Under the pieces are notes generated by a model. It was not told the origin of the DNA and did not search any database. It saw only the letters and a program-made list of their open reading frames with translations. A program made the position numbers and the translations under genes. Shown piece after piece: positions 720 through 64,000 of a stretch of DNA of 64,000 nt; position 1 is the stretch's first letter, and each line of letters begins with the position of its first letter. The DNA is from Dicyema japonicum (lineage: Eukaryota > Animalia > Dicyemida), in assembly GCA_011109175.1 (NCBI GenBank), contig RDEW01000033.1, positions 124,001 to 188,000 on the forward strand. Reading direction: 5' to 3'.

Positions 720-3700
720 TGCCTGGCAAAATTCTGCCAAGATGGTTCCCGGAAAGTTTCTTGTTGTGTGGTTATGCCTGTCGTTAAAAAAGCTCCTACA
801 AAGAAGATTACTAAAATCAAAAAGGCCACCTCTTGAGGGGTTTTAAAGAAGAGTTGTATTGAAAGCATTAAGAATCTATCTCCGGAACCGTTAACTGTGA
901 AAGACAAACCCAAAACAGCGTTTAGAGTGGAATCGACAGATCATTGTTTGACAGTTGAACTCTCGGCTATAGACAAGAGCATGGGGAGTATTAAACTTGC
1001 AAACCTGTTATGTGGATTGAAATTACTGAAAAACACCAGAGTGACTGGAAAAGGCCTCGGGATTTTCCGATTGGAGTTTAAAGAAGAGTCAGATAAAATC
1101 TCATTCGTTGAAGAGACTAATCTATTTTCTCCTTTCGGGAAAGGAAACCACAAGGTGATCGAAAGAGGCTTTCGGAAATTGTTCTAAAGAATGTGCCAAT
1201 ATGGAATGAGGAAAACGAACTTATGGTTTACATGAAGAAACTTTCTCCAACCACTGAGTCGGTGAAACGTATTGTAGGGAACGGAGGAAAACTCTCTGTT
1301 GTGAAGATGAGCTTAAAGTCAATGGCAGAAGCTACGTCCTTGATACGCCTGGGTCTTATCATTAAATGGATGGAAATCGATTGTGAGTGGGCCAGAAGAC
1401 CACCCAAGATGTTTTAATTGTCAATATTTCGGACACATTGCAATGGGGCAAAGAGATGTTTCTTATGTGGAGGAGCACATAGTTCACTCGGAGTGCCCAG
1501 AAGCGAACAATAGAAGATCCTGTATCAACTGCGGGTCTGGTGATCACGGAACGAGTTATGGTGGTTGTCCGGTTGCCAGGGAAGCCGTGGCCTTCCACAG
1601 GAAGTGGAACCGAATGTCATGGGTTAGGAACATGGAGGAGAGGAAAAAATCCTCCTCCGTCACATTACCTAGATACGAAGTCTAGTGAAAACAAGCAGGA
1701 CGCAATAATCAAAAATCGACCTCTAAAATACGATGTTATGAATCCAACACAGAAAAAGCCAATTGTGGATAAAGAATACCTGGAGGAGAAGCTAAAAAGT
1801 CTGCTGGGAATCTATTTTGGGAGCATCTGAAAGACAATCGAGAGAACTTACATATGTGATTAACCGTCTAAATGAAAAGTGTGATAAGGTAAACTTGGAT
1901 TTACTGCAAGTGGTGGCTCTGGTCCTGAAGAGATCATGCCGCCAAGACCAGTGAACCAAAACATAAGGATCATGCTCGTGAATGCCCGATCAATCTTGAG
2001 GAGGCATCACGAGCTAGCTTCCATGGCGAATGCCGAGGAAGCTGATATGATAATTGTCAACGAAATGAAGATGAAATCATGAGAATACAGTACTCCCGGG
2101 TTTCGAATCGATATCTTTATACTGCAAAGAAGGGGCTATACCAGGGACTGGAACATCAATTTTTTATCGGTATCATCTAAAGACAAGGAATCCCAGAATT
2201 GTTTCATCAATTTGTTGTGAGTTTTGATGTTCGTTGTGTAGACGGATGGCTCGCAATTGGCGGTATGTATTCCAAATCCTTGAGGAATGTACCGGAGATA
2301 TCTCCCAGTTTTTCAACGAAAACCCGATGGCCATACTGGGAGGTGATCTCAACTCCAAGAGCACTTCCTTTGGCTGCAAGAAGAGTAACAGGATGGCGAG
2401 CTCCTGATGAAGCTATCTAAAGGTCTAGGAGTAAAAGTCCCTACATCGAAAGAGGATAACCATTTTCTCCCTACGGGGTGACAAGCTTGTTGTCTTCTTG
2501 AATTCACCTGCTATTTCAGAATACGCCGACGTACCAATTACTCTTCCGGATTTTGGCAGTGACCACATTCCATTGCTAATATCCGTGGATATGAAGATGA
2601 TTAATGAACCTGGAGTCTTTGTTGGTTACGATACCAAGAATCTAAACTGGAATCACTATAAGATGTTCATTAAAAAGGAATTGATGTTAGGACATACTGA
2701 ACTTAATATTCTTCTGGAAATTGTTAAAACAAGTAAACGAGTAACGGATCTGATATTGTACTATCTGGATAACTTTGCTAGAAAAATATACTCAAGAAAC
2801 GATAATGCTGTCCCTATTCCATGGCACATCAAGAGAATTGTGTTGAAAAGAAATAATCTAAGAACTAAACTGAGGAGATGCGTAGACCCACAGGACCGCT
2901 TAGCCTTGTCTCACAAAATTGGCGAACTACAAAAGCAGTTGTCGGAAAAATTCAAAAGTTGGAATGAGAATAAGTGGAACTCTCAACTACGGAAGCTAAA
3001 CAAACACAATCCTTCTTTCTGGAAGGTATACCGAAGAGTGAGGAACCCAGAGGCAATCGCAAACAAGATTGTGCTCAAGAAACCGGATGGCACCTACTAT
3101 GCTGAAGAAGAAATACCTCTAGTTTTTGAGACACAGCTTAAAAAGATATTTGATGTGGACGATGATATCATAGCAAAGAAGACTTGTTACAAACCATTGT
3201 CAGAGAAAACAGCATTTATAGAGATCTCTCTAGAAGAGCTGAAGATAGCAATAAGAGCTGTCAAGAATAAAGCTCCGGGCAGTGATTTCATCAAAGCTAG
3301 GATGTTCAAAAAAGGCCCGGAAATTTTATTCGAAGTCCTAAAAGATATGTTCAACGCATGCATAAAAATTGGCCATGTTCCGCAGGAATGGAAGAAGACA
3401 TTGTACGGATGGTGGCTAAAACAGGAAGACCGAAAAATGATCCTGATAGCTACCGTCCGATCAGCTTGATTAGGACGATCTCAAAAAGTCATGGAAAAAA
3501 TTATCTTCTGGAGGCTTACAACTCATCTGGAAAAAGAAGATTACTTCAGAAATGATCAATTTGGTTATCGCCCAGGACGGTCATGCGATGATTGCTTATT
3601 TCATCTCAACTCCGAGTTATGCAAAGCCAGAGAATCCAAATGTCTCTCGAATATCATGTCTAGACATATCAAAAGCAGTGTTAACCACAGAGCCATAATC

Positions 3701-4560
3701 GATCAGTTATCTCGGACGGAGAACCCAAAGGAACTAGTGAATTGGGTGAAAGTATATCTAGAAGGAATAAAATCCTATGTTAGATGCGGACGCTATTTTT
3801 CAAATATGATATTATTGAAGAGAGGAGTCCTACAAGGATCAATTTTGAGCCCTATATTTAATGTTCTAATGGCGGTTCGTTCCGTCTACACCGAGTACGA
3901 GATCTCTGATATACGCAGACGACGTGCTACTGTCTGATATGTCGAGATCGATCTCAGAAAGGAGACTCAATATGTACAAGGAAGAGATAAAAGACTGGTG
4001 TGGTCTTTATGGGTTAAAACTGTCAGAAAAAAATCTAGTGCAATAATGTTCCTCGGTCGGAATGGTAAAGTAAATCAGAAAGATTCCATATGCGGAATCA
4101 ACATTGTGAGCTCTCTGAAGTATCTCGGAACAGCTTTTGAGAAATCTGGGAGCACATTGTGCGATTTTAAACTCAAAAGGAAGAAAGCCCACCATGCGTT
4201 ATTGTGTATGAGGAAATTGAGACTCGAAACGGATATGTTTTTATTTATTTTTTCACGTACGATCATTCCATCACTCCTTTATGGCACTGGAAGGATGGTA
4301 TTACACTGCATACAAAAAGCGTTTTATCTTGCTTCTTGAAAATCGAGGAGAGCAGGGATCAAGGATTGCCTTACACAAAAGGCTCGACGAGAAGCTAGAT
4401 GAAGATGAAAATTTGCTAGTAATGTCGATAAAAAATGCAGCAGAAAAAAGGATGGATAAACTACCTGAAAAGAGATGCCTCGTATGTTGCAGCACAGAAT
4501 AAACGATAAGAGAGGTCTGAGAGCGCAGAGAAGAATCCAAGTGTTTGCAGGACTTGCGGC
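720..4560 (+). mobile_element. Near full-length Jockey/I-like LINE: gag-like ORF1 (about 897-1830) and APE-RT ORF2 (about 1960-4502), frameshifted
   Basis: CCHC knuckles RCFNCQYFGH and CINCGSGDH; APE motifs MLVNARSI and GSDHIPL; RT motifs KAPGSDFI, YRPISLI, QFGYRPGRS and GVLQGSILSP. Confidence 0.9.
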
Positions 4561-6129: not shown

Positions 6130-7310
6130 TCCTTTCATAACTCTACCATCTTTTCTACACGGATTCTTCGAAGGACACTCAACAACAACTCATCTAACAA
6201 AACTGGTTCAATTCATTTCGACGGCCTGAATATCCTAAATCCACTTTTGACTCAGTATTGACTCAGTATTTGACTCAGTATCCCGGAAGATACTTAAAGC
6301 AAAAATTTTTTTGACGTCGATCCACCCTAAATTCAAATCATGGTTGGCTAACTTCATCAACGGTAGAATGATCCAGGTGGTGGCAAACAACCAAAAATCA
6401 AAACCGCAATACCTTCCAAACGGAGTTCCACAAAGATCACCGTTGTCTCCAATGCTCTTCAACATGTTCATCAGTGACCTACTATCCCCAACCACCAAAA
6501 ACACAATTCTTCTATCGTATGCGGATGATCTCGTGGTCGCAGTGAAACATTGAAGAATCGAGAAGGCGATCCGTGCAAGATCTACTAAACCTGATGGGTC
6601 TTTGGTTCCTGAAGAACCGTCTGAATATATAACCAGGAACGTCACATGTAATGACGTTCACCTCAGAACGAAAAGAATTACGGGCAACACAACGAATAAC
6701 ATTGTGTGATTCTCCGCTTCCCATTAAAAAGACCTTTTTAATCCTTGGAGTCATTCTGGATCCCCTACTCACATTTACCCATCAAGTGGACCTAGTAGCC
6801 GCGAGGATCCAAAAGAAAATTGGAATTCTCAAGGCTTTCACTCAGTCTCCAGTATCTTCCCGCTCATCGTTAGAACTTCTATACAAACAATTTGTTCTAC
6901 CTAGTATCGAGTACGCCTGTATTGCATGGATTGCCCCCATATCAATATCGGCACAGAGCAAGCTGGAGATTTTACAAAATCGATGTCTCAGGATTCTATT
7001 GAGATCGTCGAAAAAGACGTCCACTTCGTTACTTCGGAGAACACTAAACGTCCCCCCAATCATGGAATATTTTACGGAACGTCACCGGGACTTCCTCAAG
7101 ATGGCAAAGTCCCTTGACCATCCCCTCGGGCCGCACATCAAACTATATATGGACGCCTGCCCGAGATATGAGAAGAAACCTTCTCCGCTGTGGAGATTAA
7201 TCCAGGACTCTAAAACTCCTATGGACACCGGACTGGTATGGACACCGGGATCACTTAATTAACGATAATTTTTATCCTCTTTCTCGTGATTTCGGGGTTA
7301 ATAAAATAAA
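6130..7310 (+). mobile_element. Jockey/I-like LINE 3' half (RT C-terminal part, 3' stem-loop and A-rich tail)
   Basis: GVPQRSPLSPMLFNMF, SYADDL, ILGVILDPLLTF and LYKQFVLPSIEYAC; ends GGGGTTAATAAAATAAA. Confidence 0.88.
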
Positions 7311-7680
7311 TAATGCAAATGTTATTTTTTTCATTCTTGAAGGGATTGATGATTAAACTTAAAATTAATCCCAAACTAAGCATGGATTTATATTTTCTAA
7401 TAATTCTGACTATTCTCTTAGTGGAAGGGAAGGTAGAGATCTCTTTGTATGCCCTGGACCACCAGGACTCGACTTGAAAGTGAAATATCCTTACTATGGA
7501 CAGGACATGAAGGCACTATTCCTAATTATCGCCGAAATTTTTAGATCAACTTTTCTAACTGAACGTTTTTGATTTCCCAAATTAGTATAGTTTCGATTAA
7601 CTAGCCAAATCACTGATTTATAATTAAAATAAAATTAAGTTGCCATAGAAACCGATAAGAATACTATTTGAAAATTTCAA

Positions 7681-10229: not shown

Positions 10230-10565
10230 AATAATTTTGATCGGTTTATGTAAGATGGTGTAGAGGAAGTCCTATCTGCATCTAGCCATTTGGTAGAGTT
10301 GAAGGCTCAGTTTGCTCCACGGTACCCATAAATATGCTAGTCACTAAGGCACAATGGAATTTGTTTGGTCATATTCTAAGAATGAACTCAAGTAAGCTAG
10401 CTAATTTCATCATGGACAACTACTGAGCAGCGTCTAGAAAAAGATTTCGTGGCCATCCACGGCGTTTCCTGAAATTCTTAATGAGAATCAGATTCTAATA
10501 AAGAGGTCACTGAGGGACAAGCAAGACCTAAGTGATCTGAAGAGTCTGGGATTATTATTAATAAT
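10230..10565 (+). mobile_element. RTE-like LINE 3' stub
   Basis: QWNLFGHILRM...ANFIMDNY...RFRGHPR followed by an (ATT/AAT)n tail. Confidence 0.7.
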
Positions 10566-10568
10566 AAG

Positions 10569-10900
10569 CCAAAAATCACCAGGTAAACTAATTACAAGGA
10601 AAACGCCATCAAGTGATCCCGGCTTCTCTCAGAATATTCTCATCTTTACCGGTGTCGCTCTCGGGAACCGACACATTTTCGATAACACCGTTCTTCTGGC
10701 GGTTTTCCATTTTGGGTGAATATGCCGCCGGAATTTCCCACAAGGACCTCAAATGGGGTTGTCCTTATTGGTAGTCTTGTGATTCGGAAGATTATTTCTG
10801 CCATATTGGATTCGGCAGCGTTGATCCATGTTTGTTTTGGCGAGTTTAATAGTCGATCAAGCAGAAGAGGGTGGAAGAGATTGGTACATATAGAATTATA
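10569..10900 (-). mobile_element. Jockey-like LINE 3' stub with terminal stem-loop
   Basis: About 330 bp similar to 44849-45200; carries CCGGGATCAC...GTGATTTTTGG. Confidence 0.8.
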
Positions 10901-11902: not shown

Positions 11903-11975
11903 ATATTTATTCAATAACCCCGGATATGTCGGAAAGAGGTTAAAAGTTAATTAATGTCTAACTATGATATATTCA
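11903..11975 (-). repeat. SINE family B tail stub
   Basis: Minus strand ...ATATCCGGGGTTATTGAATAAAT matches the family B tail. Confidence 0.55.
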
Positions 11976-12270
11976 GTTCCGCAAACCAGGCAGCTTGTCA
12001 CTCGTGACGCGATTAGCCATGGGTTCGATTCCCACATTGCTACCTACCTAGTCGAAAGATTCTATTCTGGTCTGCGACTTGTTCAAATTCTAATAGACGT
12101 CTTGTGATCCATTTGTCTCAGGAGATACCTAGTGTCTAACCGGCATTCAAAAAGTATCTATTTTCTTTCCTCCACTGGATGGAATCTCACAATGGTGGAT
12201 ATGGATAGACGTGATGTTTCAAAAAAACGAGTCTCATTCGACCGAGGAACCAGGATGTAGAGGTGATAAG
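11975..12270 (+). mobile_element. SINE family B, diverged copy retaining a tRNA-like head
   Basis: GGGTTCGATTCCC B box near 12026, then GACGTCTTGTGATCCATTTGTCT...CCGGCA...CTCCACTGGA, which aligns with the 55568 core. Confidence 0.65.
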
Positions 12271-13647: not shown

Positions 13648-14129
13648 ATACTAACAAGACATGGTGTTCACTAACAAAATTCATGAAAATTAAATCAATC
13701 AAAAATTTTTTAAAGCCACAATCCGCAAATTTTTGAAGTAGGATGGTCAATGATAAGAAAATATTGTGGCTCAACAAAATTTAAGAATTTAGGCAAGTTG
13801 AGGTGTCAATGTGCTCAATTCATAAAAATCTGAATTCGGAGTTGTAAAATGACTTCAGAGTTATATAGCACACAGGGGTCATGTGTAGAAAAAAGTAATT
13901 TAATTTAGATTTTTCACACTTTGTGGTGATGACAAAATTTCAGGAGAGATTTTGGTTGTGGAAGTTGGCATTATATCGCTAGACCGTTTGAGACGGTGGA
14001 GGTCAATAAGAAGTATAAACTTCTGATAATTGAAATTGGCATAATGAATAAGTCAAGCTCTTCGTCATGTGCGATGACGTATGAAGGATTTGTCACACAA
14101 GGAATATTTAAGGTGGTTTGGAGTTGATA

Positions 14130-15104
14130 NNNNNNNNNNNNNNNNNNNNNNNNNNNNNNNNNNNNNNNNNNNNNNNNNNNNNNNNNNNNNNNNNNNNNNN
14201 NNNNNNNNNNNNNNNNNNNNNNNNNNNNNNNNNNNNNNNNNNNNNNNNNNNNNNNNNNNNNNNNNNNNNNNNNNNNNNNNNNNNNNNNNNNNNNNNNNNN
14301 NNNNNNNNNNNNNNNNNNNNNNNNNNNNNNNNNNNNNNNNNNNNNNNNNNNNNNNNNNNNNNNNNNNNNNNNNNNNNNNNNNNNNNNNNNNNNNNNNNNN
14401 NNNNNNNNNNNNNNNNNNNNNNNNNNNNNNNNNNNNNNNNNNNNNNNNNNNNNNNNNNNNNNNNNNNNNNNNNNNNNNNNNNNNNNNNNNNNNNNNNNNN
14501 NNNNNNNNNNNNNNNNNNNNNNNNNNNNNNNNNNNNNNNNNNNNNNNNNNNNNNNNNNNNNNNNNNNNNNNNNNNNNNNNNNNNNNNNNNNNNNNNNNNN
14601 NNNNNNNNNNNNNNNNNNNNNNNNNNNNNNNNNNNNNNNNNNNNNNNNNNNNNNNNNNNNNNNNNNNNNNNNNNNNNNNNNNNNNNNNNNNNNNNNNNNN
14701 NNNNNNNNNNNNNNNNNNNNNNNNNNNNNNNNNNNNNNNNNNNNNNNNNNNNNNNNNNNNNNNNNNNNNNNNNNNNNNNNNNNNNNNNNNNNNNNNNNNN
14801 NNNNNNNNNNNNNNNNNNNNNNNNNNNNNNNNNNNNNNNNNNNNNNNNNNNNNNNNNNNNNNNNNNNNNNNNNNNNNNNNNNNNNNNNNNNNNNNNNNNN
14901 NNNNNNNNNNNNNNNNNNNNNNNNNNNNNNNNNNNNNNNNNNNNNNNNNNNNNNNNNNNNNNNNNNNNNNNNNNNNNNNNNNNNNNNNNNNNNNNNNNNN
15001 NNNNNNNNNNNNNNNNNNNNNNNNNNNNNNNNNNNNNNNNNNNNNNNNNNNNNNNNNNNNNNNNNNNNNNNNNNNNNNNNNNNNNNNNNNNNNNNNNNNN
15101 NNNN
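14130..15104. other. Assembly gap (run of N)
   Basis: 975 N bases. Confidence 1.
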
Positions 15105-15725
15105 AATGGATTCGGGGTTCATTTCACATGAGCATTTATCATAATGAGACCATATTCAGGTACATCAAATCCCGCGAGGAACACAAAGAAAAATATGTGG
15201 TTGCTGAGTTTGACTGAGATCACCTAATGTAGCCTTTTCTTTTTCCTAAATTTTAATTATTTAAGAATTCAACTGTAAACATAGAGAAATTCTTGTCATT
15301 AAAATGTTCTAGAATTAATAATCGCCTATTTACAAGTAGTCTACATTAACGTAATAAGAAACACAGTCTGAAGGTAATATGTTTCAGATACCCTTTAAGT
15401 GATCCGAAAAAGACATTAATTAATGAAGAAAGGATTTATGTTTTTAATGATGTGACTGACTTGAGTGAAGTCGTAAAGTGATTTATTTTACAGATTGTCT
15501 TCATAAACCCCAAAAAATGTATCTCTCGTTCTCCCTTTTACATGGACGAAAAGAAGAAGAAATGCTTCTGCAGTTCTCTGACGTGTAAGTTGAGTTGTAA
15601 AGAGAGAATAATAGACAGACTAAGAGTAAGATGAAGACTAACATTATTAGAGTGTTGTCAACCACTCAACCAACAAGATAGGATTTTGATAAATTTAAAT
15701 AAATTCATATTTCCTGATATTATTT

Positions 15726-15985
15726 TATGGTAGCGCAATGTAACGAGTTCTGTCAAGAGGCATGATGACCCTTAGTTCGAATCTCGCTGTTGTACACTCT
15801 GGCTAATGATTCCACGCATCTAAGATGCTTTGGCTTGAAGAGTGACGCCGTCATCAGTGAAAGTCTCACTGCGGAAAAGGATCGTCTACAAAACGACTTA
15901 CACTTTACATACAGAAATATGAAGTGAGGAATATCCCTTGGTCCTTCCTCTTCGATTAGTTACCATTACTGTTCTTTACTAAACT
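15726..15985 (+). mobile_element. SINE family A, copy 2
   Basis: TAGCGCAATG (A box), AGTTCGAATC (B box), GCATCTAAGATGC, GAGTGACGCCGTCATCAGTG...CACTGC and tail GATTAGTTA...ACTGTTCTTTACT. Confidence 0.85.
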
Positions 15986-16879
15986 AAATTTTTTGTCGTG
16001 CCTGGGAGAAATTATAGCTAATATGAATTATCCTCCTCTTGCATGAAAACGTCCTGTTTATATTTGATGACACTGAGAAGAGTCTTGTTCGACTATGCGA
16101 ATAAAATCCATGGAAATAAAGTAACTTCACGATTTCGTATTCGTGCATAAAATTTGTTTTATCAAAAGATTTAGCTTACACATTTTCTTTCACTATGTTA
16201 TCCGACAAGAGCTGCCAAAAGGTTTGTCACCCATGTCAGAAGATCCCTGAGGATTCCGAATAGAATCATAGCCCTTTTTTGTTGCCATACAATTGAGCAT
16301 CAACTAAATATAGGAGATATTAATGTAACTTTAGAATTTCATTTATACACACAAAGTAGAAATTCTTTATCTCCAAAAGATTATACTTGCATATTTTTTT
16401 CTTTCCTGATGATATCATTAAGAGAGCATACCATCCAGAAAAATCCGAATCTTCGCAAAAAGAGATCAACCACCTAAGCAGATGGTTAGAGTCAACATAG
16501 AATTACGCAATATTTAAACACTTTATCCAAAAAAGTGGACGATGTGGTGGTTGGCTTCGTTTGTTGATACATACTCTTCGAAAAATTTGACCGCTTCAGT
16601 CTCTGCCCCGAGTAATGCTCCTAAGCAAACAGAAAATCAGAAGATAATGAAGTATTGAAGCATTTCGAAATATCACATGTTCGTCTCATTTGCTATTAAG
16701 ACGTCTGGAATCCAATGCCCACAAACGGACGATCTACTCAGTCGAATCTGCTCAATGGTATAGAGGGTCACCAAGGATCCATGTGAGATTGGAAGAGTTT
16801 CTATTAGTTAAGCCTTGATTGATTTTACCTGTTAAGGAAAACCAACAATTTTAATTTTAAAAATTTTTCTCTTAAAGGA

Positions 16880-25200: not shown

Positions 25201-25229
25201 CTAAAAAACTTTAGCACGTTTGGGTTGTT

Positions 25230-25380
25230 TTTTTATTTATTAACCCCGGATACACCGAGAAAGAAGTTAAAGTAAACAACTAATTAAGTGTATCCAGTTT
25301 CCACTTCCACAGAAACAAAGTCCATCAGAAATCAGCATAATGGGTAAACGTCCATTACATGCAGTTGTGGAAACCTTTTT
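25230..25380 (-). mobile_element. SINE family B, 3' portion
   Basis: Near-identical to 55655-55790 and 56850-56990, including the GGATACAC/GTGTATCC stem and AATAAATAA tail. Confidence 0.85.
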
Positions 25381-27259: not shown

Positions 27260-27526
27260 AATCAAAGTTGTCAGCCATCCAAGGGCCGGCCTATTTTCAG
27301 TGGATGGCCAAATCCCTCGAGGAACAGAGGAAGATCCTAAGGGCAACCAAAAGCCCAGAAAATCTTCTGTATGAAACACTCTCAATATACATCAAGCGGA
27401 AACCGTGTTAAATGAGGAGGGCTACAGAGGACGGACTCGACGACTTGCTTGTCGGTTTAGGATCATTAGTTAGTTGAAAACTTTTTCCTTTCCTTTAGCC
27501 CAGTGATCATGGGGTAATAAAATAAA
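27260..27526 (+). mobile_element. Jockey-like LINE 3' stub with terminal stem-loop
   Basis: GGATCATT...AGTGATCATGGGGTAATAAAATAAA; similar to the 62220-62290 end. Confidence 0.7.
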
Positions 27527-27579
27527 TTGTTGGTAGTCACCCTCCTTCTCTTAGAGAGGATTTTGCGGCCAATTCCCAC

Positions 27580-33513: not shown

Positions 33514-34215
33514 ATGTCAAGACGCACAACACCTAAATTATGGGAGTTTTTATTAGTTATTCTTAAAAATGATAAATACGAAAGCATAATCAAGTGGAGA
33601 GGGGACAGACAGTTTGTGTTTCAGGATGCTGAAGCTGTCGCTATGCTTTGGGGAAAACAGAAAAATAAAAAACATATGAACTACAAAAAACTAAGCCGAT
33701 CTTTAAGACACTACTACAAGAAAAGGATTATGAATAAGGTCACTGGATTGAATTATGTTTATGAATTCCATCCCAGTTTGAATTTGAATATAAACATTAA
33801 CCGATTTGCTAATTTAAAAGGCAGTGGTGATTCTTCTGTCCCAACAAACTCTGAAAATGTGGTGAGAGAACCGAAAGTGGTTCACAAGGCACACCAAATA
33901 CATCCAAAAAGTCAACAAAATCGTCAATCTCAAATGAAGATTAACTTTGGTCAAAATTTAGAAAAAATCAGAAATTTGGAAAACAGAGATAGTAATTTGA
34001 ATAATATATTAATCCTACCTTGGTGTCCTTCCTTTCCTTATTTAGATTTCCCATACTCAATGTCTCCATTCACACCAAGTCCGTTGTTGTTGTCTTCAGT
34101 ATTTCGATTTGAACCAAAACCACAGAAGGAATCCAATGAAACAGAATTGTCAAAGAACACAATTCAATCAACTCAGTCACCCAATAATAATTTTCCTTTA
34201 TTTAGTAAGGATTAA
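33514..34215 (+). CDS. ETS-domain transcription factor (N-terminal ETS domain, PEA3-like C-terminal half), intronless
   Basis: KLWEFLL...IIKW...AVAMLWGKQKNKKHMNYKKLSRSLRHYYKKRIMNKVTGLNYVYEF. Confidence 0.95.
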   Translation: MSRRTTPKLWEFLLVILKNDKYESIIKWRGDRQFVFQDAEAVAMLWGKQKNKKHMNYKKLSRSLRHYYKKRIMNKVTGLNYVYEFHPSLNLNININRFANLKGSGDSSVPTNSENVVREPKVVHKAHQIHPKSQQNRQSQMKINFGQNLEKIRNLENRDSNLNNILILPWCPSFPYLDFPYSMSPFTPSPLLLSSVFRFEPKPQKESNETELSKNTIQSTQSPNNNFPLFSKD

Positions 34216-39839: not shown

Positions 39840-40660
39840 ATAGTGAATAACAACTTCAACGGACGAAGAGGAAGAGTAATTTCACATTCTACAATTTCTG
39901 TCACTAAATTTTTCCAGATATCACCACTGTTACCCATTCTCTTCAATCTTTTTATGAGCGGCATGCCTTCTCATAGCATCAACGAGACTCTGATCGTCGC
40001 TTATGCTGACGACATAATCCTGGCAACAAGAGACCAATGTATTCACACAGTGGGTACCAGTTACAAGATCTATTGACAACCTGAACTGTAAGCCTTAGAG
40101 GAACCTATTACACACAAGTCCTGAAAAGTCAAGCTCAATGATTTTTACTTCCTTTAGAAAACTGACAAACTCGACACCTTTTGTAACTCTTAATGGAATA
40201 TCAATCCTTTCATAAAATCAATCAAAACTGAGAATCACATGCAACGCACTTATAACTTTCAGCAAACACATAACAACGTCATCTTCTCTTCCTAACGAAA
40301 ACTAAATTTTGTAAAAATGCTACTTGGATACTAAAAAAGCTATTTCATCTTTACACAATGTATACAACCAACAATCTGCTACTGCTGTGCGGCATGGGCC
40401 ATTAACCTATCATATACCAACTTAAAGAAAATCAATTCCTTGTAAAAAATAGTCACAAAGTTCTTCTCGCCATTAATGCCAACTCCGTTCGAAGAACTTC
40501 TGAGGAGAACGGGAGCCCCGTTGAAACTTCAAAATTTCCGAAAAGTGAATTATTCATACAGTAGGTGTGTCAGTTCTTGGGAGGAAAACCGAGAAAAGGT
40601 GCTTAAGGAGCTCGGGATCACATTACCCTCTCAGATCCACAAAAATTATTTATTTTTAAC
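39840..40660 (+). mobile_element. Jockey-like LINE 3' remnant
   Basis: LLPILFNLFM and VAYADDII; ends CGGGATCAC...GATCC. Confidence 0.75.
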
Positions 40661-44742: not shown

Positions 44743-44848
44743 TATGAAGTTGGAAAGTATATGAGAGATCGAGTTTCACAATTTTAGAAACTCTTCTTTA
44801 ATCTTCGGATTCTCTAATCTCAAATGAAGAAAACATTAATTAAAATAA

Positions 44849-46740
44849 AATCACCAGGTAAAATAAAAAACTCCATTAGGTGATCCCGGCTTCTCTCAGC
44901 AATATTCTTATCTTTTCCCGGTGTTGCTCTCGGGAACCGATTCATTTTTGATAACCCATTCTTCAGGAAGTTTTCCATTTTGTATGAATATAACGCCCGA
45001 CTTCCTCACAAAGATTTTAAATGGAGTTGCACTTTTTGGTGGTCCTGTGATTCGAGAGATTGTTTTGTTCATACTGTATTGAGTGGAGTTGATCTTATCC
45101 ATGTTTGTTCTGGCAAGTTTTGTTCCCCAAGCTTCACATACATGACTTATAGTTGACTCGATGAATTGAAAGTACAACGTGGATAGTGACCGGTTCAAGG
45201 ATCCTATAAATTTTTGAGACGAGCACCTTCACTAAATTAAGCTGTCGTGCCGAAGCACTGATTACGTTTGACACATGTGTTCTGAAGGTCATGAGGGTGT
45301 CGTAGTTACTCCTAGAATCTTAGCTTTTCTTGTGTTAGTTCACCGTTAAAAATATTTCCGTGAGATAACTTGATAGCCTTCTATTCGACGTAAAAATACA
45401 AGTCGAGGACTTTTCAATGGACGTTGAAATTGAATTTATGTTAAACCATTAATGAAGTCTGCCTAGAGTAGTTTGCAATATGTTCGTAGCTATCGTAACA
45501 GCTGTATCCTTGCATAAATTATGTAATCGGCATACGCAAAGGTTATCGAATTTTAGTCCGAACAGATTGAAATATCGTACAAGAATAAGTAAAAAACGAC
45601 GGTTACAAGGGGATCCCTTTGGAAGGAATTTTGAGACCGGTTGGCAGGATTTTGTTGCGACTTTTCCTCTTCTACCAGTGAGAAAGTTCCCGAGCCATCT
45701 TTTGATTTCTGAGCAGTAGATCTTTTTTGTCAGAATTTTTATGGGACACAGTCAAAAGCCCTGCGTATGTCAACCGAGCACAATAAAGTTTTGAAGTGCC
45801 TAGGCTTTGACTCAAGTCCCCCCATAATAAAGTTTGTGAGGGTTTTCGTACTTGTATATAAGTCTTTCTTAAATCCGTGTTGGAAGGATTCTTTAGGTAA
45901 ACATGAGAAGATGCGGTCCAAAACCATTTTCTCAAAATTGCGCATAATAAGGATATTGGTTGATTAGAATGGGACTCTTTTGGTATTCTAGATTTCTGTA
46001 CTGTGTGGATGTAAGCCAACTTCCACATTGTTACAAATGTGTTTCTATTTATGGATCTGTTTTATCTGTGTTAGTGCTGTGAGTGCCTGGGTCCAAGCTT
46101 TTTGATAACAATCATAGGAATTTGATCTGGTCGTTTGAGTAGGTTAGCTTTTGGGATTTTATGCTATTTTCGACTTCCACTGGTGGGGGATAAGGAAGGA
46201 CCCTCGTACTTTTTATGAGGTAAGTAGCTGTTCTAAGCGTAGAATTTCATCATTCTATAGAGTTCCTTTTTGCTGTATTCAGAACTGTTTCTTTATCAGG
46301 ATTTTTGATCTTTGAGAATGTCTTCTACATAATAGATATGGACCTCTGCTTGTTAAACGTGGAGGTGGTTTTCTCCATTCGCCACTTTTTTTCTTAGAGA
46401 TTTTCTATATTTCGCTATTCATCACTAGGATTGTGGTCGCAAGTTGGTAAGAGGAGCAATGTTAGTGGTGGAAGGATCAAATCAGGTGAAGTAGTGTTGT
46501 CATAAGCTCTATACTGAGTTATTTTGTTTATCCGATAATCGTTGAGAATTATGAAATTATCCAGTAGATAGAGAAGTTTTGCTTTTGTACCAGGTTGGGT
46601 GTTTTGGGTTGAGGTCGCCACAAATCAACAAATTCTGGTATTGATGTAACACAAGCAGAAATAGAGTAAACTCCTTTGGACAGGTGGCGTTATTGTGTGC
46701 CCAATCTCTCTTTTGACTAGAGAAAGGCGTATGAAATAAT
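44849..46740 (-). mobile_element. Jockey-like LINE (APE fragment, RT, C-terminus, terminal stem-loop), decayed
   Basis: TTSPDLIL, HSNQPISLL, FQHGFKK and SVDIRRAFDCV; ends CCGGGATCACC...GGTGATT. Confidence 0.85.
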
Positions 46741-52530: not shown

Positions 52531-52699
52531 GGTTAAATAAAGTGGCTTTTATAATTTTTACGCCATAATCAATTAATAACAAAACGTGTTTGATTAACTT
52601 TCATATTTAAAAACACTAAATCAATATAGTATTATGTTGAAAATGTCAAAATGAAAAAGAAAAAGGCTTACCAAGCATTTATGTGTCTATTTATTAATT

Positions 52700-52985
52700 T
52701 AATAACCATGAGAAAAAAGTTAAAGTAAACAACTAATTAAGTGTATCCAGTTTCCACTTCTACAGAGTTCAACCGGAATCAACATAATGGGTAAGACGTC
52801 CATTAAATGCAGTTGTGGAAACCCCTCCAGTGGAGTGGGGAAGAGCAAATGATCCTTTTTCGTGCCGGCCTGGCACTGGGCGTCACCTAGACAGGTGGAT
52901 CACATGACGCCACTCTAATAGGAAGAGAGAGGAGGAACAAGCAAGCAGAAACTTCAACCAGTTAGCCACGAAGCACCACATGGCG
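52700..52985 (-). mobile_element. SINE family B copy with intact pseudoknot core (52850-52911)
   Basis: Near-identical to 55494-55790. Confidence 0.88.
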
Positions 52986-53049
52986 CCACGAGGCGTGAGA
53001 TAATAGATGTGTCTATGAAAACTTAATTTGAAGAAGGATACGTTTATCT

Positions 53050-54659: not shown

Positions 54660-55090
54660 CTGTATTAGATCAGTCTTAATTATTACGATTTAAACTGATC
54701 CCGATGCGTTCCACTAAAATCCTCATCCTTTCCCGGTGCTCCTCCCTCGTGCCCACACAAGCTCGTACTGAACGGCTGACTGTATTTGCAGGGCTACTTT
54801 CCCGCATGCCGGAGTTTAGTTTTATGAGGGCCTCCAGAGTAGTCGGTCCGGTTCTGTGTATCCCACAAGTCCACCGCTCCGTAACTCTAAAAGCCTTTGT
54901 ACGTCCTAGATTTTCTTAGTATTCGTCCATGATAATGAAGGTCCCACGAAGCACACGCGTACAAGAAACATGGTTCAATGTATTGTTTGTAGATATTCGT
55001 AAAAACCGGGTGGGTACCGGTCTTCCATTTTCTAGATAATCAATTCAATACATTGATTTTCTTCTCGCACTTCAGAACAATGTTGCCACG
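54660..55090 (-). mobile_element. Jockey-like LINE 3' fragment with terminal stem-loop
   Basis: KCEKKINVL (cf. the 49214 ORF); end GATCAGT...ACTGATC. Confidence 0.72.
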
Positions 55091-55493: not shown

Positions 55494-55800
55494 CGCCATG
55501 TGGTGCTTCCTGGCTAACTGGTTGAAGTTTCTGTTTGTTTGTTCCTCCTCTCTCTTCCTATTAGAGTGGCGTCATGTGATCCACCTGTCTAGGTGACGCC
55601 CAGTGCCAGCCGGCACAAAAAAGGATCATTTGCTCTTCTCCACTCCACTGGAGGGTTTTCCACAACTGCATGTAATGGACGTCTTTTACCTTTATGCTAA
55701 TTCCGGATGGACTCTGTTTCTGTAAAAGTGGAAACTGGATACACTTAATTAGTTGTTTACTTTAACTTCTTTCTCATTGTATCCGGGGTTGTTTAATTAA
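55494..55800 (+). mobile_element. SINE family B reference copy (pseudoknot core 55568-55628, tail stem 55737-55784)
   Basis: About seven related segments in the window. Confidence 0.88.
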
Positions 55801-55859
55801 TTAAAAATGTGGGAGCTGGATAGGCAGGAATAAGCCGATGCATATACATTGATAATCGA

Positions 55860-56751: not shown

Positions 56752-56990
56752 AAGTTTCTGTTTGTTCGTCTGTTATTCCTATTAGAGTGGCGCTCAGTGC
56801 CAGGCCGGCACGAAAAAGGATCATTTTCTTTCCCCCACTCCACTGGAGTGGTTTCCACAACTGCATGTATGGACGTCTTTTACCCTTTATGTTGATTTCG
56901 GTTGGATTCTGTAGAAGTGGAAACTGGATACACTTAATTAGTTGTTTACTTTAATTTCTTTTTCGGTGTATCCGGGGTTAATAAATAAAT
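56752..56990 (+). mobile_element. SINE family B copy with a deletion of most of the P1-P3 core
   Basis: GAGTGGCG-CTCAGTGCCAGGCCGGCACGAAAAAGGATCA...GTGTATCCGGGGTTAATAAATAAAT. Confidence 0.88.
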
Positions 56991-57119
56991 ATCAATTACG
57001 AAATTTCTCCGAAACCTGGATCCCGGATTTCCTCCAGGAGGCACCTAGGCGGAGATAATGAAAGGGATTCTTTCGGCAGCAAATGGGAGTATCGGAACCT
57101 GGTCCCCAGCACTGTTTAA

Positions 57120-58788: not shown

Positions 58789-58915
58789 AGACTACTGTTA
58801 AACCGTAAAAAACTAAACTAAGTGATCTCGACAAATTGGATCAAGGCTCTCATCTTTGCTCGATGTTGATCCCTTGAGCCTTCACAAGTTCGTTGCGGGC
58901 GAGCACTTCCTTTTT
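58789..58915 (-). mobile_element. Jockey-like 3' stub with degenerate terminal stem-loop
   Basis: Minus strand TTGTCGAGATCACTTAG...AGTAGTCT. Confidence 0.5.
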
Positions 58916-59400: not shown

Positions 59401-60749
59401 AGTAACAAATTGAATATGACGTCAGCAGAAACGCAGCAGCTCAAATGATCCAAAGAAAAGTATAATATTGGTAACTTAACGGAGACCGAATCAATTTTTA
59501 TGATTTACCGACCAATTATCCGTACCTTGCTGACAAATCATATTATTTAATCTCTCTATTAAAAGAAAAATTTACAAATTCTTTAACTTTGTATTATTTA
59601 TTAATAATATTTATAATTTATTTAATAATATAAATATCTTGTATATATTAGAATCATATAGTTTAAACCATACTATCATTTGATATATTGATTTTAATGA
59701 ATAATTTTCCATCTTATAAATAAATTTACAAAAATCAAGATTGGCTGTCTGATTGTGCTTGAGAGAGTTACTACTGGCGTATTTCGCTATTTAATTACTC
59801 TCGGGAAGGTCTGAGTATGTGGCTTTGTTGGGTTGAGAAACTTAATGCTTAGTGTATACGCTTTGACCAGAAATCATTTCAATTGTTGGTTTATTGAAAT
59901 AGGGCTGCCTGGTTGGGAAGTCAAATGAGCACAGCTTTGTATGTAACTCAATTCAGACTATTCCTGATAGCCTTTTTATTTATGAGTTATTTTTGGAATT
60001 GTTAAATCTTCTTATGAACAGAGTTTCCTTCCGAGATTTCCTCGCTGTTATTTCCTTTTGAATTACATTCGAAGATCTTTTTCTCAATTTCATTAAAAAT
60101 ACTTCAATGTCTCGAGTCCTTCTGGAACGACACAATTGTTAAAAGGGATCTTCCTACTTTTCTCTTTGACCAAATATTCCGATGAAGATTGCATTATGAA
60201 AACTATTCCCAAAAGAATGAAGTGATTTCCGCCACGGTAAGACATGGACAAAAATGTAAGAATGCAGACTAACTTCCCCTCCTCTCTTTGGAAACGGAAG
60301 CCTGTAATGAAGTATTGGAAAATGGATTTGGTCGGCACAAGCAGATGTTCTCCCTTTTGTTCCTTCCTTGGATTAATTAGTTATGACTTTGTGCTGGGCT
60401 TACAATGGTAAGCCTGGGGTTAATAATAAGCACAAAAAGCTGCAGAGACAATTACTACCTTTGCAAAATATCCATGGATATCTTTACTGTTCCAATTTCG
60501 TGTTAAAATTCAAATTTACTTTCCACTTAGTTACCAGACTAGTATGAAACTAATAATCCGAAGAGCAAGTCTACAGTTTTCCAAAATTTAAATAAAAAAT
60601 TTGTTCCCGAGTCAATGCTTTTTTCACATTAATCCAAGCAAAATATAAGCAATTTCTTAATTCCCGATGAATACATTGATTGATCAAGGTCTGATCCTTA
60701 GCACCCTGACTCAACCTTCTCGTTCAAGTTGATTGTGAGAATTAAGTTC

Positions 60750-62051: not shown

Positions 62052-62209
62052 AACTCCGCTGTATGTGGAACTCCACAAGGTCCAATCGAAATAAATTTAG
62101 TTCTCTGGATAATTCAGATTTTTCTGAGTTGAATGGTGTAATTTTTAATTAAAATCGTTAATAGTTTTAAAAACATAAAGTAGCAAAAAACCAGTCAATA
62201 TTAATAGAT

Positions 62210-64000
62210 TATTATTACATCCAGGATCACTGGGTCAAGAAAAGAAATTAAAGGTTCTCATCTAACTAAGTGATCCCAGACCGACAAGGAGAGGACGAGT
62301 CCGGTGGGGTCGAGAATCCTGAACAGCTCTTCTCATTGAACATGGCATCGGCTCAAAATTTATGTGTGATTGTAGATATTTCGATGGTGTATGAAATAGA
62401 GGGCAGCTCGGTAAACTAGCCTCCTTTAAGAGTTTCTGTTGTAATTCGATTAAGAAATGTTAATGGGCTGGATTTTGTGTCTGGTCCAATTAACCTTATT
62501 GCAGTCTCCTCGATTGCGGATATTTTCAATGAGGAGGATCGTGAAATCTGCATTGCCCATGAAGGACTTGCATGTATCATCGTGGGTCGAATAAATTGTT
62601 CATAGATCGTGGCAAGGCCACCAGTTTGGTCTCTAAGTGTTTTTAAGATCACTTTTAAAATTCTCATTTTCTTCAGAGCAGAAGTTACTTGGTTCTCAAC
62701 ATGTCTGATAAAGGTGAGTCAAAGGTGACTCACATAATCTTCGGTGTTTTGTTAATAGGAATAGCCTCGTTCTTCATAAAGATTTTTGGTTCGATACAGA
62801 GCTGTCTTTTGTAGGTGGTAAACAGTGTGACAAAGGTGTCGAGTCCCCGCGGACTGAGTCGCTGATTAAATGCTTCTGTTGTTGGAGGCAAGAATGATAT
62901 CGTCAGCATAGGAGAAGATTAGACAGTTTTCATTACAGGTTTGTCGTTTATGTAGAGATTGAAGAGTTGGGGTGATAGTGGGGAGCCTTGAGGGACTCCA
63001 TTAAGATCTTGATTTGATGTTGTTGCAGAGTACTTGTGCTCGTCTCCTACTTAAGAAGTTGGCAATCCATAGTTTTATGTTTGAGTGGATGCATGTATCG
63101 TAAATTTTCTCAGTAAGGAGTTTTCTTGAGACTGTGTCGAAAGTCTTTGTTAAATCAACAGAAACCAAGACTGTTCGTTGGTGTGGTTTAGTGAATTGAA
63201 TCCCACCGCAATGAACTGGCACAGGGACGTTAAGTATGTTGCTCATCTTCCATTTAGGATGTTTCCAAGCCAAAGTTTCAGGTTCGGATGGATGTTGGTT
63301 TCAAATATTTTCTTTGTTAGGAGTTTCCTAGGGACTGAGTCGAACGCTTTTGTGATGTCCACGGATATAAGTACTGTCCTCTGATAGGGTTTGGGGGAGT
63401 TAAATCCTTCCGCAATGAATTGTGTGAGGGTTGTAAGGTGTGTTGTTGTCGAATGTCTTGTATTTTATCCAAAACAAGCCTTTCAAGGATCCTTGAGACA
63501 GGACTTAGAATAGATATTGGGCGATAGGAAAATGGTTCATCTATTGGTTTGTTGGGTTTTCGGATAGGTCTGATTAGAGACTTTTTCCATTTTCAGGGAT
63601 TGTATTTGTGTTAATGGATAGGTTGAATATATATGCTAATAGTTCCAGGGCTAGATGTCCTAGGTGCTTCAGTTCACATGTGGTTATGTTGTCTGGTCCT
63701 TTGGCCTCTGAGTTGTTGGCTTTGGATATGGCTCTCCGAACATTCTGACTAGTAAATAGGATCCAGTCATCGGAGCGTTTTGGTTCAATCTTTTTCAGGA
63801 ATACTTGGTGTTCTTTTGAAAACTTTTGTAGGAGATAGACGTATAATATTTTATCAGAGTGTCTGGTTTTATGTAGACTTCGACTTTTCTCTCTGGGGAG
63901 GATCTTTTGATGTTCTTGATCCACTTCCACACTCTCTGCATTGGGGGATTTTTGCAGAGAGCCTTTGATAGTCTCGTCCATCTATTTGCATTTTCTTCCT
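62210..64000 (-). mobile_element. Jockey-like LINE (RT, C-terminus, terminal stem-loop), runs off the window
   Basis: AKGPDNI, YRPISILSPVSRILE, SVDLTKTFDTV, GVPQGSPLSP, SYADDII and IYEQFIRPTMIHA; end CTGGGATCACT...AGTGATCCTGG. Confidence 0.92.

Follow-up and report, generated by a model that had tools for sequence, protein, structure and literature searches.

The retroelement end at 7245-7310 of the window (the whole 64,000-nucleotide stretch of Dicyema japonicum DNA analysed here) raises the question of whether the inverted repeat that it carries is a selected RNA stem-loop, and whether this stem-loop is the cis signal that an autonomous LINE shares with a short non-coding partner, SINE-B, as an earlier note on this DNA had proposed. 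The D. japonicum genome (67.5 Mb, 377 scaffolds, 36.7% GC, 49% repeats) has been published with its repeats essentially uncharacterised, the genome paper mentioning only "LINE-1 ORF2" copies (PMC6736024), and our search of the searchable literature for dicyemid LINE or SINE tails found nothing. The sequences quoted in the earlier note were all recovered at the positions where it had placed them. The window is clearly metazoan and dense in decayed retroelements; it also contains an open frame with an ETS DNA-binding domain at 33514-34215 (+) (PF00178, E 4e-26), which probably belongs as an exon to a transcription-factor gene of the host. It has 975 N, and its region 14001-16000, where GC falls to 0.18 and "ORFs" of ~380 aa lie on both strands, most likely marks a gap in the assembly and no genuine feature.

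A decayed LINE, a copy of the family that we call A1, has its 3′ end at 7245-7312. The 5′ arm (7245-7254, CCGGGATCAC) and 3′ arm (7286-7295, GTGATTTCGG) form 10 of 10 pairs, including two G.U, around a 31-nt loop (7255-7285), and the tail from 7296 (GGTTAATAAAATAAATA) has the form GGTTAAT(AAAT)n. In a fixed-arm shuffle test this stem was matched by none of 5000 shuffles, and a stem of the same type is the minimum free energy (MFE) structure in the A1 sister copy L071 (RNAfold, z -3.5). The same LINE contributes a C-terminal ORF2 fragment (Table 1), and Pfam places an RVT_1 fragment at 6311-6553, just upstream of this open reading frame. The frame in the window ends in ...PGSLN-stop, with a 14-for-15-nt replacement near its end; we rejected this ending as the family C-terminus because small indels close to the ORF end account for it in both the window copy and L121, and the frame that carries the protein homology gives the true family C-terminus as ...G-M-D-T-G-I-T-stop.

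The earlier note had listed eight separate LINE ends with this stem-loop in the window. BLAST against other loci reduced them to only about five families, namely A (7245), B (10569, 44849 and 40613), C (27460 and 62221), D (54668) and E (58789). RNAfold and the fixed-arm shuffle test ranked the listed ends alike, and together they sustained the stem-loop at 7245, 10569, 44849, 54668 and 62221, whereas 27460 and 58789 proved to be decayed and 40613 unsupported. The family-C end at 62221-62279 (-) forms 11-13 bp (z -4.67; covariance model 53.7 bits; 2/5000 shuffles) and has sister copies at L030:1081, L048:1417, L025:868 and L003:427. At 54668 (-) the stem is a perfect 10 bp (arms 54667-54676/54692-54701), and the C-G to G-C swap described earlier is present there as a change of pair 10 with pairing kept; a genome search for further copies of this family-D stem returned none, leaving the window copy as the sole exact one. 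Of the two family-B ends, 10569-10622 (-) has 9-10 pairs and one bulge (50.9 bits; 81/5000 shuffles), and its stem forms with a z of only -1.3, while the copy at 44849-44889 (-), whose end is 77% identical to 10540-10900, forms 9 bp (z -2.2) and carries a synonymous ACT>ACC that turns pair 11 into C-G. The copy at 27460-27508 is a decayed sister of 62221 (RNAfold z +0.39), and the family-E relative L021:2417-2564 (hairpin part L021:2497-2565) is better preserved than the window copy, with 8/8 pairs (GGGATCAC/GTGGTCTT). The GGATC/GATCC pairing reported at 40613-40638 is the GGATCC palindrome, and 2212/5000 shuffles were as good; the covariance model gave no match there at E<=5, and the sequence past the 5′ arm no longer aligns with the B-type family. 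Four copies in the window were absent from the earlier list (52691-52756 (-), 11903-11982 (-), 60388-60434 (+) and 55494-55803).

Table 1 Hairpin-bearing retroelement ends and the associated ORF2 fragment in the window (CM, covariance model R1; shuffles, fixed-arm shuffle test).
Feature	Position	Strand	Details
C-terminal ORF2 fragment, same LINE as 7245 hairpin	6651..7262	+	203 aa open
Family-A1 LINE copy, 3′ module	7239..7312	+	CM R1 89.9 bits
Family-B LINE end	10553..10628	-	CCGGGATCAC(T) / (G)GTGATTTTTGG, one bulge, stop TGA, tail CTTATTATTAATAATAAT
Old diverged SINE-B-type tail	11903..11982	-	GAATATATC / GACATATCC + GGGGTTATTGAATAAAT; CM 26.8 bits
SINE-B, 5′-truncated	25229..25378	-	tail module 25229-25303; CM 82.5 bits
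Decayed family-C LINE end	27452..27528	+	GGATCATT / AGTGATC; CM 27.7 bits
Decayed B-type LINE end	40613..40638	+	5′ arm CGGGATCAC kept; 3′ arm lost or rearranged
Second family-B end	44828..44895	-	stem GGGATCACC/GGTGATTTT; CM 35.4 bits
SINE-B copy, 3′ arm deleted	52691..52994	-	module 52691-52756(-); CM match
Family-D end	54667..54701	-	10-bp stem GGAUCAGUUU / AAGACUGAUC(U); RNAfold z -4.46
SINE-B, near full-length	55494..55803	+	tail module 55729-55803; CM 63.9 bits
SINE-B, 5′-truncated	56787..56992	+	tail module 56918-56992: CTGGATACAC / GTGTATCCGG + GGTTAATAAATAAAT; CM 85.3 bits
Family-E end, decayed	58789..58830	-	GAGATCACT / AGTAGTCT, 7/8 pairs; RNAfold z +0.74
Non-coding repeat, minimal hairpin	60388..60434	+	CTGGGCTTAC-AATG-GTAAGCCTGG + GGTTAATAATAA; 3/5000 shuffles
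Family-C LINE end	62204..62285	-	TCTGGGATCACT / AGTGATCCTGG, stop TAG, tail GTAATAATAAT

We extended the analysis to the whole assembly (67,542,437 bases in 377 contigs) with the ORF at 6651-7262 as query, which gave 3,294 first-look candidates, 154 of them scored (38-100% identity). Seventy-eight ends were sampled by protein match alone and are so unbiased towards the hairpin. The arm context was recognisable in 61 of these 78 protein-picked ends; among the 61, pairing reached at least 8/10 in 54 and at least 9/10 in 43. The majority 3′ end reads ...GGT ATG GAC ACC GGG ATC ACT TAA TTAGACGATAACTTTTATCCTCTTTCTC GTGATTTCGG GGTTAATAAAATAAAT. A covariance model (R1; 75 positions, 10 pairs) seeded with 24 ends yielded 119 matches (E<=5) across 307 kb, and besides A1, A2 and SINE-B these represent families C (6 copies), G (2), H (4), J (5) and B (5), family I (2 copies, with a UUUU bulge) and the single-copy families K, N and O. 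Across the 336 kb sampled, at least 12 element families in addition to SINE-B end in the module. The terminal repeat is either GGTTAAT(AAAT)2-4 or (TAA)n, variable in repeat number, and is followed directly by flanking DNA or a target-site duplication (TSD).

The GGGATCAC hairpin is absent from an RTE-like LINE at L127 (G000:C157:834500-840500), indicating that only one group of the LINEs in this genome possesses the module. The L127 element lies on the minus strand, and its single, apparently intact ORF (986 aa; reverse complement 981-3938) encodes a reverse transcriptase preceded by an endonuclease-like N-terminus; it ends in ...AQGRLD-stop and is followed by a short A/T-rich tail. At L122:6087-6159 and 6188-6260 (+), the A2 tail module is tandemly duplicated within one LINE end, as identical copies ~100 nt apart. 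A wholly different 8-bp stem, CCAGTTTC/GAAACTGG, stands directly before the same GGTTAATAAATTAAT end at L125:4910-4960 (+), which may represent another lineage in which only the junction and the repeat have been retained.

That compensatory change keeps the stem paired across families was confirmed in the seed alignment, the R1 alignment and a 13-family table. In the MAFFT alignment of the 24 seed ends, to which no structure was fitted, 92% of cells were paired, compared with 22-51% with a slid partner, and 0/500 shuffles matched the observed pairing or covariation score, although such shuffle statistics overstate independence in families that share an ancestor. The R1-fitted alignment of the 119 matches, which leans towards structure and whose copies are not independent, was 90.7% paired, with two-sided changes at 9/10 pairs. 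We then reduced the data to 13 family-level arm pairs, counting changes by family and not on a tree: two-sided changes occurred at pairs 1, 2, 4, 5, 6, 7 and 8, pairs 9 and 10 were invariant in this table, and pairing was retained in nearly all family-level arm differences. Some of the two-sided changes (families D, K and N) come from single copies. Pair 7 is a U.U mismatch in 6/13 families. RNAfold returns the hairpin as the MFE structure for A1, A2, SINE-B, B, C and D (z -2.2 to -4.7; A2 z -2.4). Aligned tails, pairing and z scores together bear out a 3′-terminal stem-loop common to divergent LINE families and SINE-B. An inner hairpin of family A (GAUAA/UUAUC) was rejected as part of the module, because its register is not conserved in the other families.

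These data can be set against the view that the 3′ ends are alike through neutral common descent, with coding constraint on a Gly-Ile-Thr C-terminus and a pairing without function. The families are indeed homologous, the core GATC is self-complementary, and shuffles pair as well as the copies at 27460, 58789 and 40613 do. However, the tail is far more conserved than the adjoining coding DNA (A1 and A2 are 84-86% identical over the 64-nt tail and 55-57% over the last 168 coding nt), the synonymous sites of the C-terminal codons are fixed, and pairing is kept in nearly all family differences, including two-sided ones in non-coding elements. In addition, the imperfect combinations are asymmetric, G.U/U.G exceeding A.C/C.A by 23 to 1 in the family table and by 178 to 30 when single copies are counted. 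We consider this explanation hardly credible.

The same asymmetry indicates a structure on the sense strand only, i.e., an RNA and not a DNA palindrome, and thereby bears on a second alternative, in which the inverted repeat works as double- or single-stranded DNA (in target choice or second-strand synthesis) or as a signal for 3′-end formation and polyadenylation. Abundant wobble pairs restricted to the sense strand exclude a symmetric DNA palindrome. The polyadenylation version gains from an AATAAA in the A1 and SINE-B tails, but the A2, C and J tails are (TAA)n without AATAAA, and the insertions end in a short repeat and not in poly(A). This alternative is, in our assessment, highly improbable; like neutral descent, it fits the data poorly.

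The position of the stem relative to the gene is a further feature. The 5′ arm is coding: GGG-ATC-AC(T/C) specifies Gly-Ile-Thr, with which ORF2 ends, and the stop codon, coming immediately afterwards, is the first triplet of the loop. Copies from three separate families keep this Gly-Ile-Thr-stop frame open over 176, 144 and 130 codons. At 69/79 GGN-ATH-ACN-stop sites in the 336 kb the sequence is GGGATCAC, and the Gly-Ile-Thr codons of the arm are thus fixed at synonymous positions. The identity of the stop codon depends on the family (TAA, TAG or TGA), and the stop-at-arm arrangement occurs in at least 10 LINE families using the three stop codons. Since the arm consists of the last sense codons and the stop is the first unpaired triplet, a ribosome finishing ORF2 must open the hairpin. 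One conceivable consequence, which we think unlikely, is termination-coupled loading, in which the ribosome ending ORF2 would open the hairpin and the hairpin would refold beside the nascent ORF2 protein; if true, this would give cis-preference a physical basis, bypassed in trans by SINE-B.

A stronger version makes the hairpin mainly a translational device: the terminating ribosome would have to melt it, and on refolding it could either present the 3′ end in cis to the ORF2 protein just made or tune termination, the copying of SINEs in trans being a by-product. The constant placement of the stop directly after the arm, although it is TAA, TAG or TGA by family, and the fixed synonymous sites of the Gly-Ile-Thr codons speak in its favour. 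On the other hand, SINE-B and the repeat ending at 60434 keep the stem by compensated changes with no ORF reaching the hairpin, and the fixed position of the stop may be mere inheritance. We regard the translational device as quite unlikely to be the main role, whereas a translational role is possible as an added function.

SINE-B carries the same module in non-coding form. Its full length is about 315-340 nt, and many copies are 5′-truncated at graded points. A 209-nt query gave at least 1,750 first-look candidates genome-wide, 40 of which were scored, at 90-94% identity; copies compared with the reference copy are 89-94% identical to it. Several copies are flanked by TSDs of 7-10 bp, e.g., TGGCTTTAAT and AATATCTAG. 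With TSDs, 5′ truncation, high copy number and no ORF, SINE-B shows the hallmarks of a retroposon. In the window, the stems of the three SINE-B tails listed earlier each have 10/10 pairs, the tail of the copy at 56787..56992 folds with a z of -4.18 (RNAfold), and the copy at 25246-25297, previously listed without a strand, lies on the minus strand.

The surroundings of the SINE-B stem resemble a LINE tail, as pointed out before: over its last 68 nt, SINE-B is 78-81% identical to the tails of LINE families A and I. The arms of SINE-B and A1 differ at 7/20 positions, yet 10/10 pairs stay paired; at pairs 6 and 7, A-U/U-A has become U-A/A-U. The arms of SINE-B had been described as having an extra base on both sides, but they align with the LINE arms free of gaps, and two adjacent swapped pairs are an equally good reading of the same difference.

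The origin of the SINE-B head was searched for separately. ARAGORN detected no tRNA in it, and Rfam gave no family at E<=1 in four loci, 5S and 7SL being absent too; at E<=10, the head and body gave only chance-level miRNA/ctRNA matches. An A-box-like TGGCTAATTGG was seen in the head by eye only, and the first ~110 nt (e.g., L005:1390-1500) contain a long imperfect inverted repeat, GCCGCGTGGCGCCATGTGGTGC...ATTAGAGTGGCGTCATGTG. SINE-B is therefore described here as a non-autonomous retroposon with a LINE-type tail, its Pol III ancestry being unproven.

A pattern search for the SINE-B version of the stem without a preceding SINE body returned 12 sites genome-wide, all SINE-B-like, and the assembly yielded no autonomous LINE with the exact stem of SINE-B. 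This leaves two readings: the partner of SINE-B is gone, or the machinery responds to stem shape and not to pairs 5-7. The tail similarity of 78-81% and the common fold point to a probable partnership between the LINEs and SINE-B. The proposal of a cis signal for a LINE-SINE pair thus holds for the shared covarying tail and for a SINE-B that looks LINE-dependent; an exact partner did not emerge, since no LINE in the assembly carries the SINE-B stem.

A second non-coding rider is the repeat whose 3′ end is the minimal hairpin at 60388..60434. This apparently non-coding repeat, at about 60113-60434, is distinct from SINE-B; its stem is changed on both sides at pairs 6 and 8, and further copies of the minimal hairpin lie at L047:1033-1079 (-) and near L048:1960. 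The nuclear RNase P RNA gene is encoded in full length at 59743-59972 (+) of the window (Rfam RF00009, 56 bits, E 2e-13); derivation of the repeat ending at 60434 from this adjacent upstream gene was checked, and the two are unrelated.

Three features of stringent-type tails are present together here, i.e., a conserved stem-loop at the extreme 3′ end, a non-autonomous element that shares it, and a variable terminal tandem repeat. By analogy with the stringent LINEs of fish, we consider it probable, with some confidence, that the dicyemid module is the cis-acting 3′ tail of stringent-type LINEs and is copied by non-autonomous partners. The LINE RNA would end in a 10-11-bp hairpin, with GGG-AUC-ACU/C as the 5′ arm and the stop codon opening the loop, and after the 3′ arm would come GG and then a short repeat rich in A and U, either UUAAU(AAAU)n or (UAA)n. 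The reverse transcriptase would presumably recognise this tail, the ORF2 protein binding the hairpin and initiating target-primed reverse transcription at the terminal repeat. Because they carry the same hairpin and repeat, SINE-B and one or more further non-coding repeats would be copied in trans.

This reading extends to a dicyemid a stringent LINE/SINE 3′-tail system known from experiments on L2 elements of fish. Few animals are as reduced as dicyemids, and yet repeats make up 49% of the genome (PMC6736024). With one stem core common to a dozen LINE families and no fewer than two non-coding riders, nature provides a series of compensated variants that could show whether an ORF2 protein responds to stem shape, to the U.U hinge or to the junction of GG with UUAAUAA. 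Because hairpin and stop codon overlap, a connection between the end of translation and the assembly of the RNP can be put to the test, and the R1 model, which marks LINE and SINE 3′ ends, could improve the repeat annotation of this genome.

The clade of the LINE is less clear than its tail. The "Jockey-like" label given earlier is not established: the tails are (AAAT)n or (TAA)n and never poly(A), and the nearest outside relatives are 25-45% identical. Jockey proper ends in poly(A), and the clade is known from arthropods; a hairpin with a short-repeat tail is typical of CR1/L2-type stringent LINEs. The dicyemid elements resemble Jockey in that the thumb/C-terminal region of their reverse transcriptase is short, at about 200 aa, and differ from it in ending in a hairpin and short repeat. 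Pfam recognised RVT_1 alone in the LINE protein, and a word-based protein search found no named relatives. The nearest ESM-Atlas clusters to the reverse transcriptase are RVT_1 clusters, one of them auto-named "mobile element jockey", which we take as a lead only. An exhaustive HMMER search of 1.84 billion representatives gave 65 matches (best E 4e-8, 25-45% identity). The most similar outside proteins are ORF2s of about 890 aa with a reverse transcriptase. Five of these relatives, of about 876-918 aa, were read; they are matched at their C-terminal ends, 4/5 have an endonuclease-like N-terminus, 0/5 have a Gly-Ile-Thr C-terminus, and a single one bears a name, as an insect hypothetical protein.

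Compared with classical SINEs that bear a LINE-derived tail, SINE-B is likewise short, abundant and non-coding, with TSDs, 5′ truncations and a LINE-type tail, but its head has no detectable tRNA, 5S, 7SL or other Rfam family. In the stringent LINEs of eel and zebrafish, the ORF2 protein binds the 3′ stem-loop and reverse transcription starts, with slippage, on a short repeat at the terminus; stems are alike among related LINEs while loops vary, a U-U or A-A mismatch acts as a needed hinge, and SINEs that copy the tail are mobilised (PMC1636434, PMC4176376). The dicyemid elements are like UnaL2 with UnaSINE1/2 and ZfL2-1/ZfL2-2 of the L2 clade in having a 3′-terminal stem-loop followed by a short tandem repeat, a tail copied by a SINE, similar stems with highly variable loops, and a U-U mismatch within the stem (the pair-7 U.U above). 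They are unlike UnaL2/ZfL2 in that the 5′ arm is coding and the stop opens the loop, which leaves a 3′ UTR of only about 50 nt, and their terminal repeat is (AAAU)n/(UAA)n as opposed to (UGUAA)n. Moreover, at least 12 families of one genome keep the same stem core. The kind of system is thus well known, and what is unusual here is that the hairpin overlaps the last codons and the stop, and that one stem core is kept in a dozen families.
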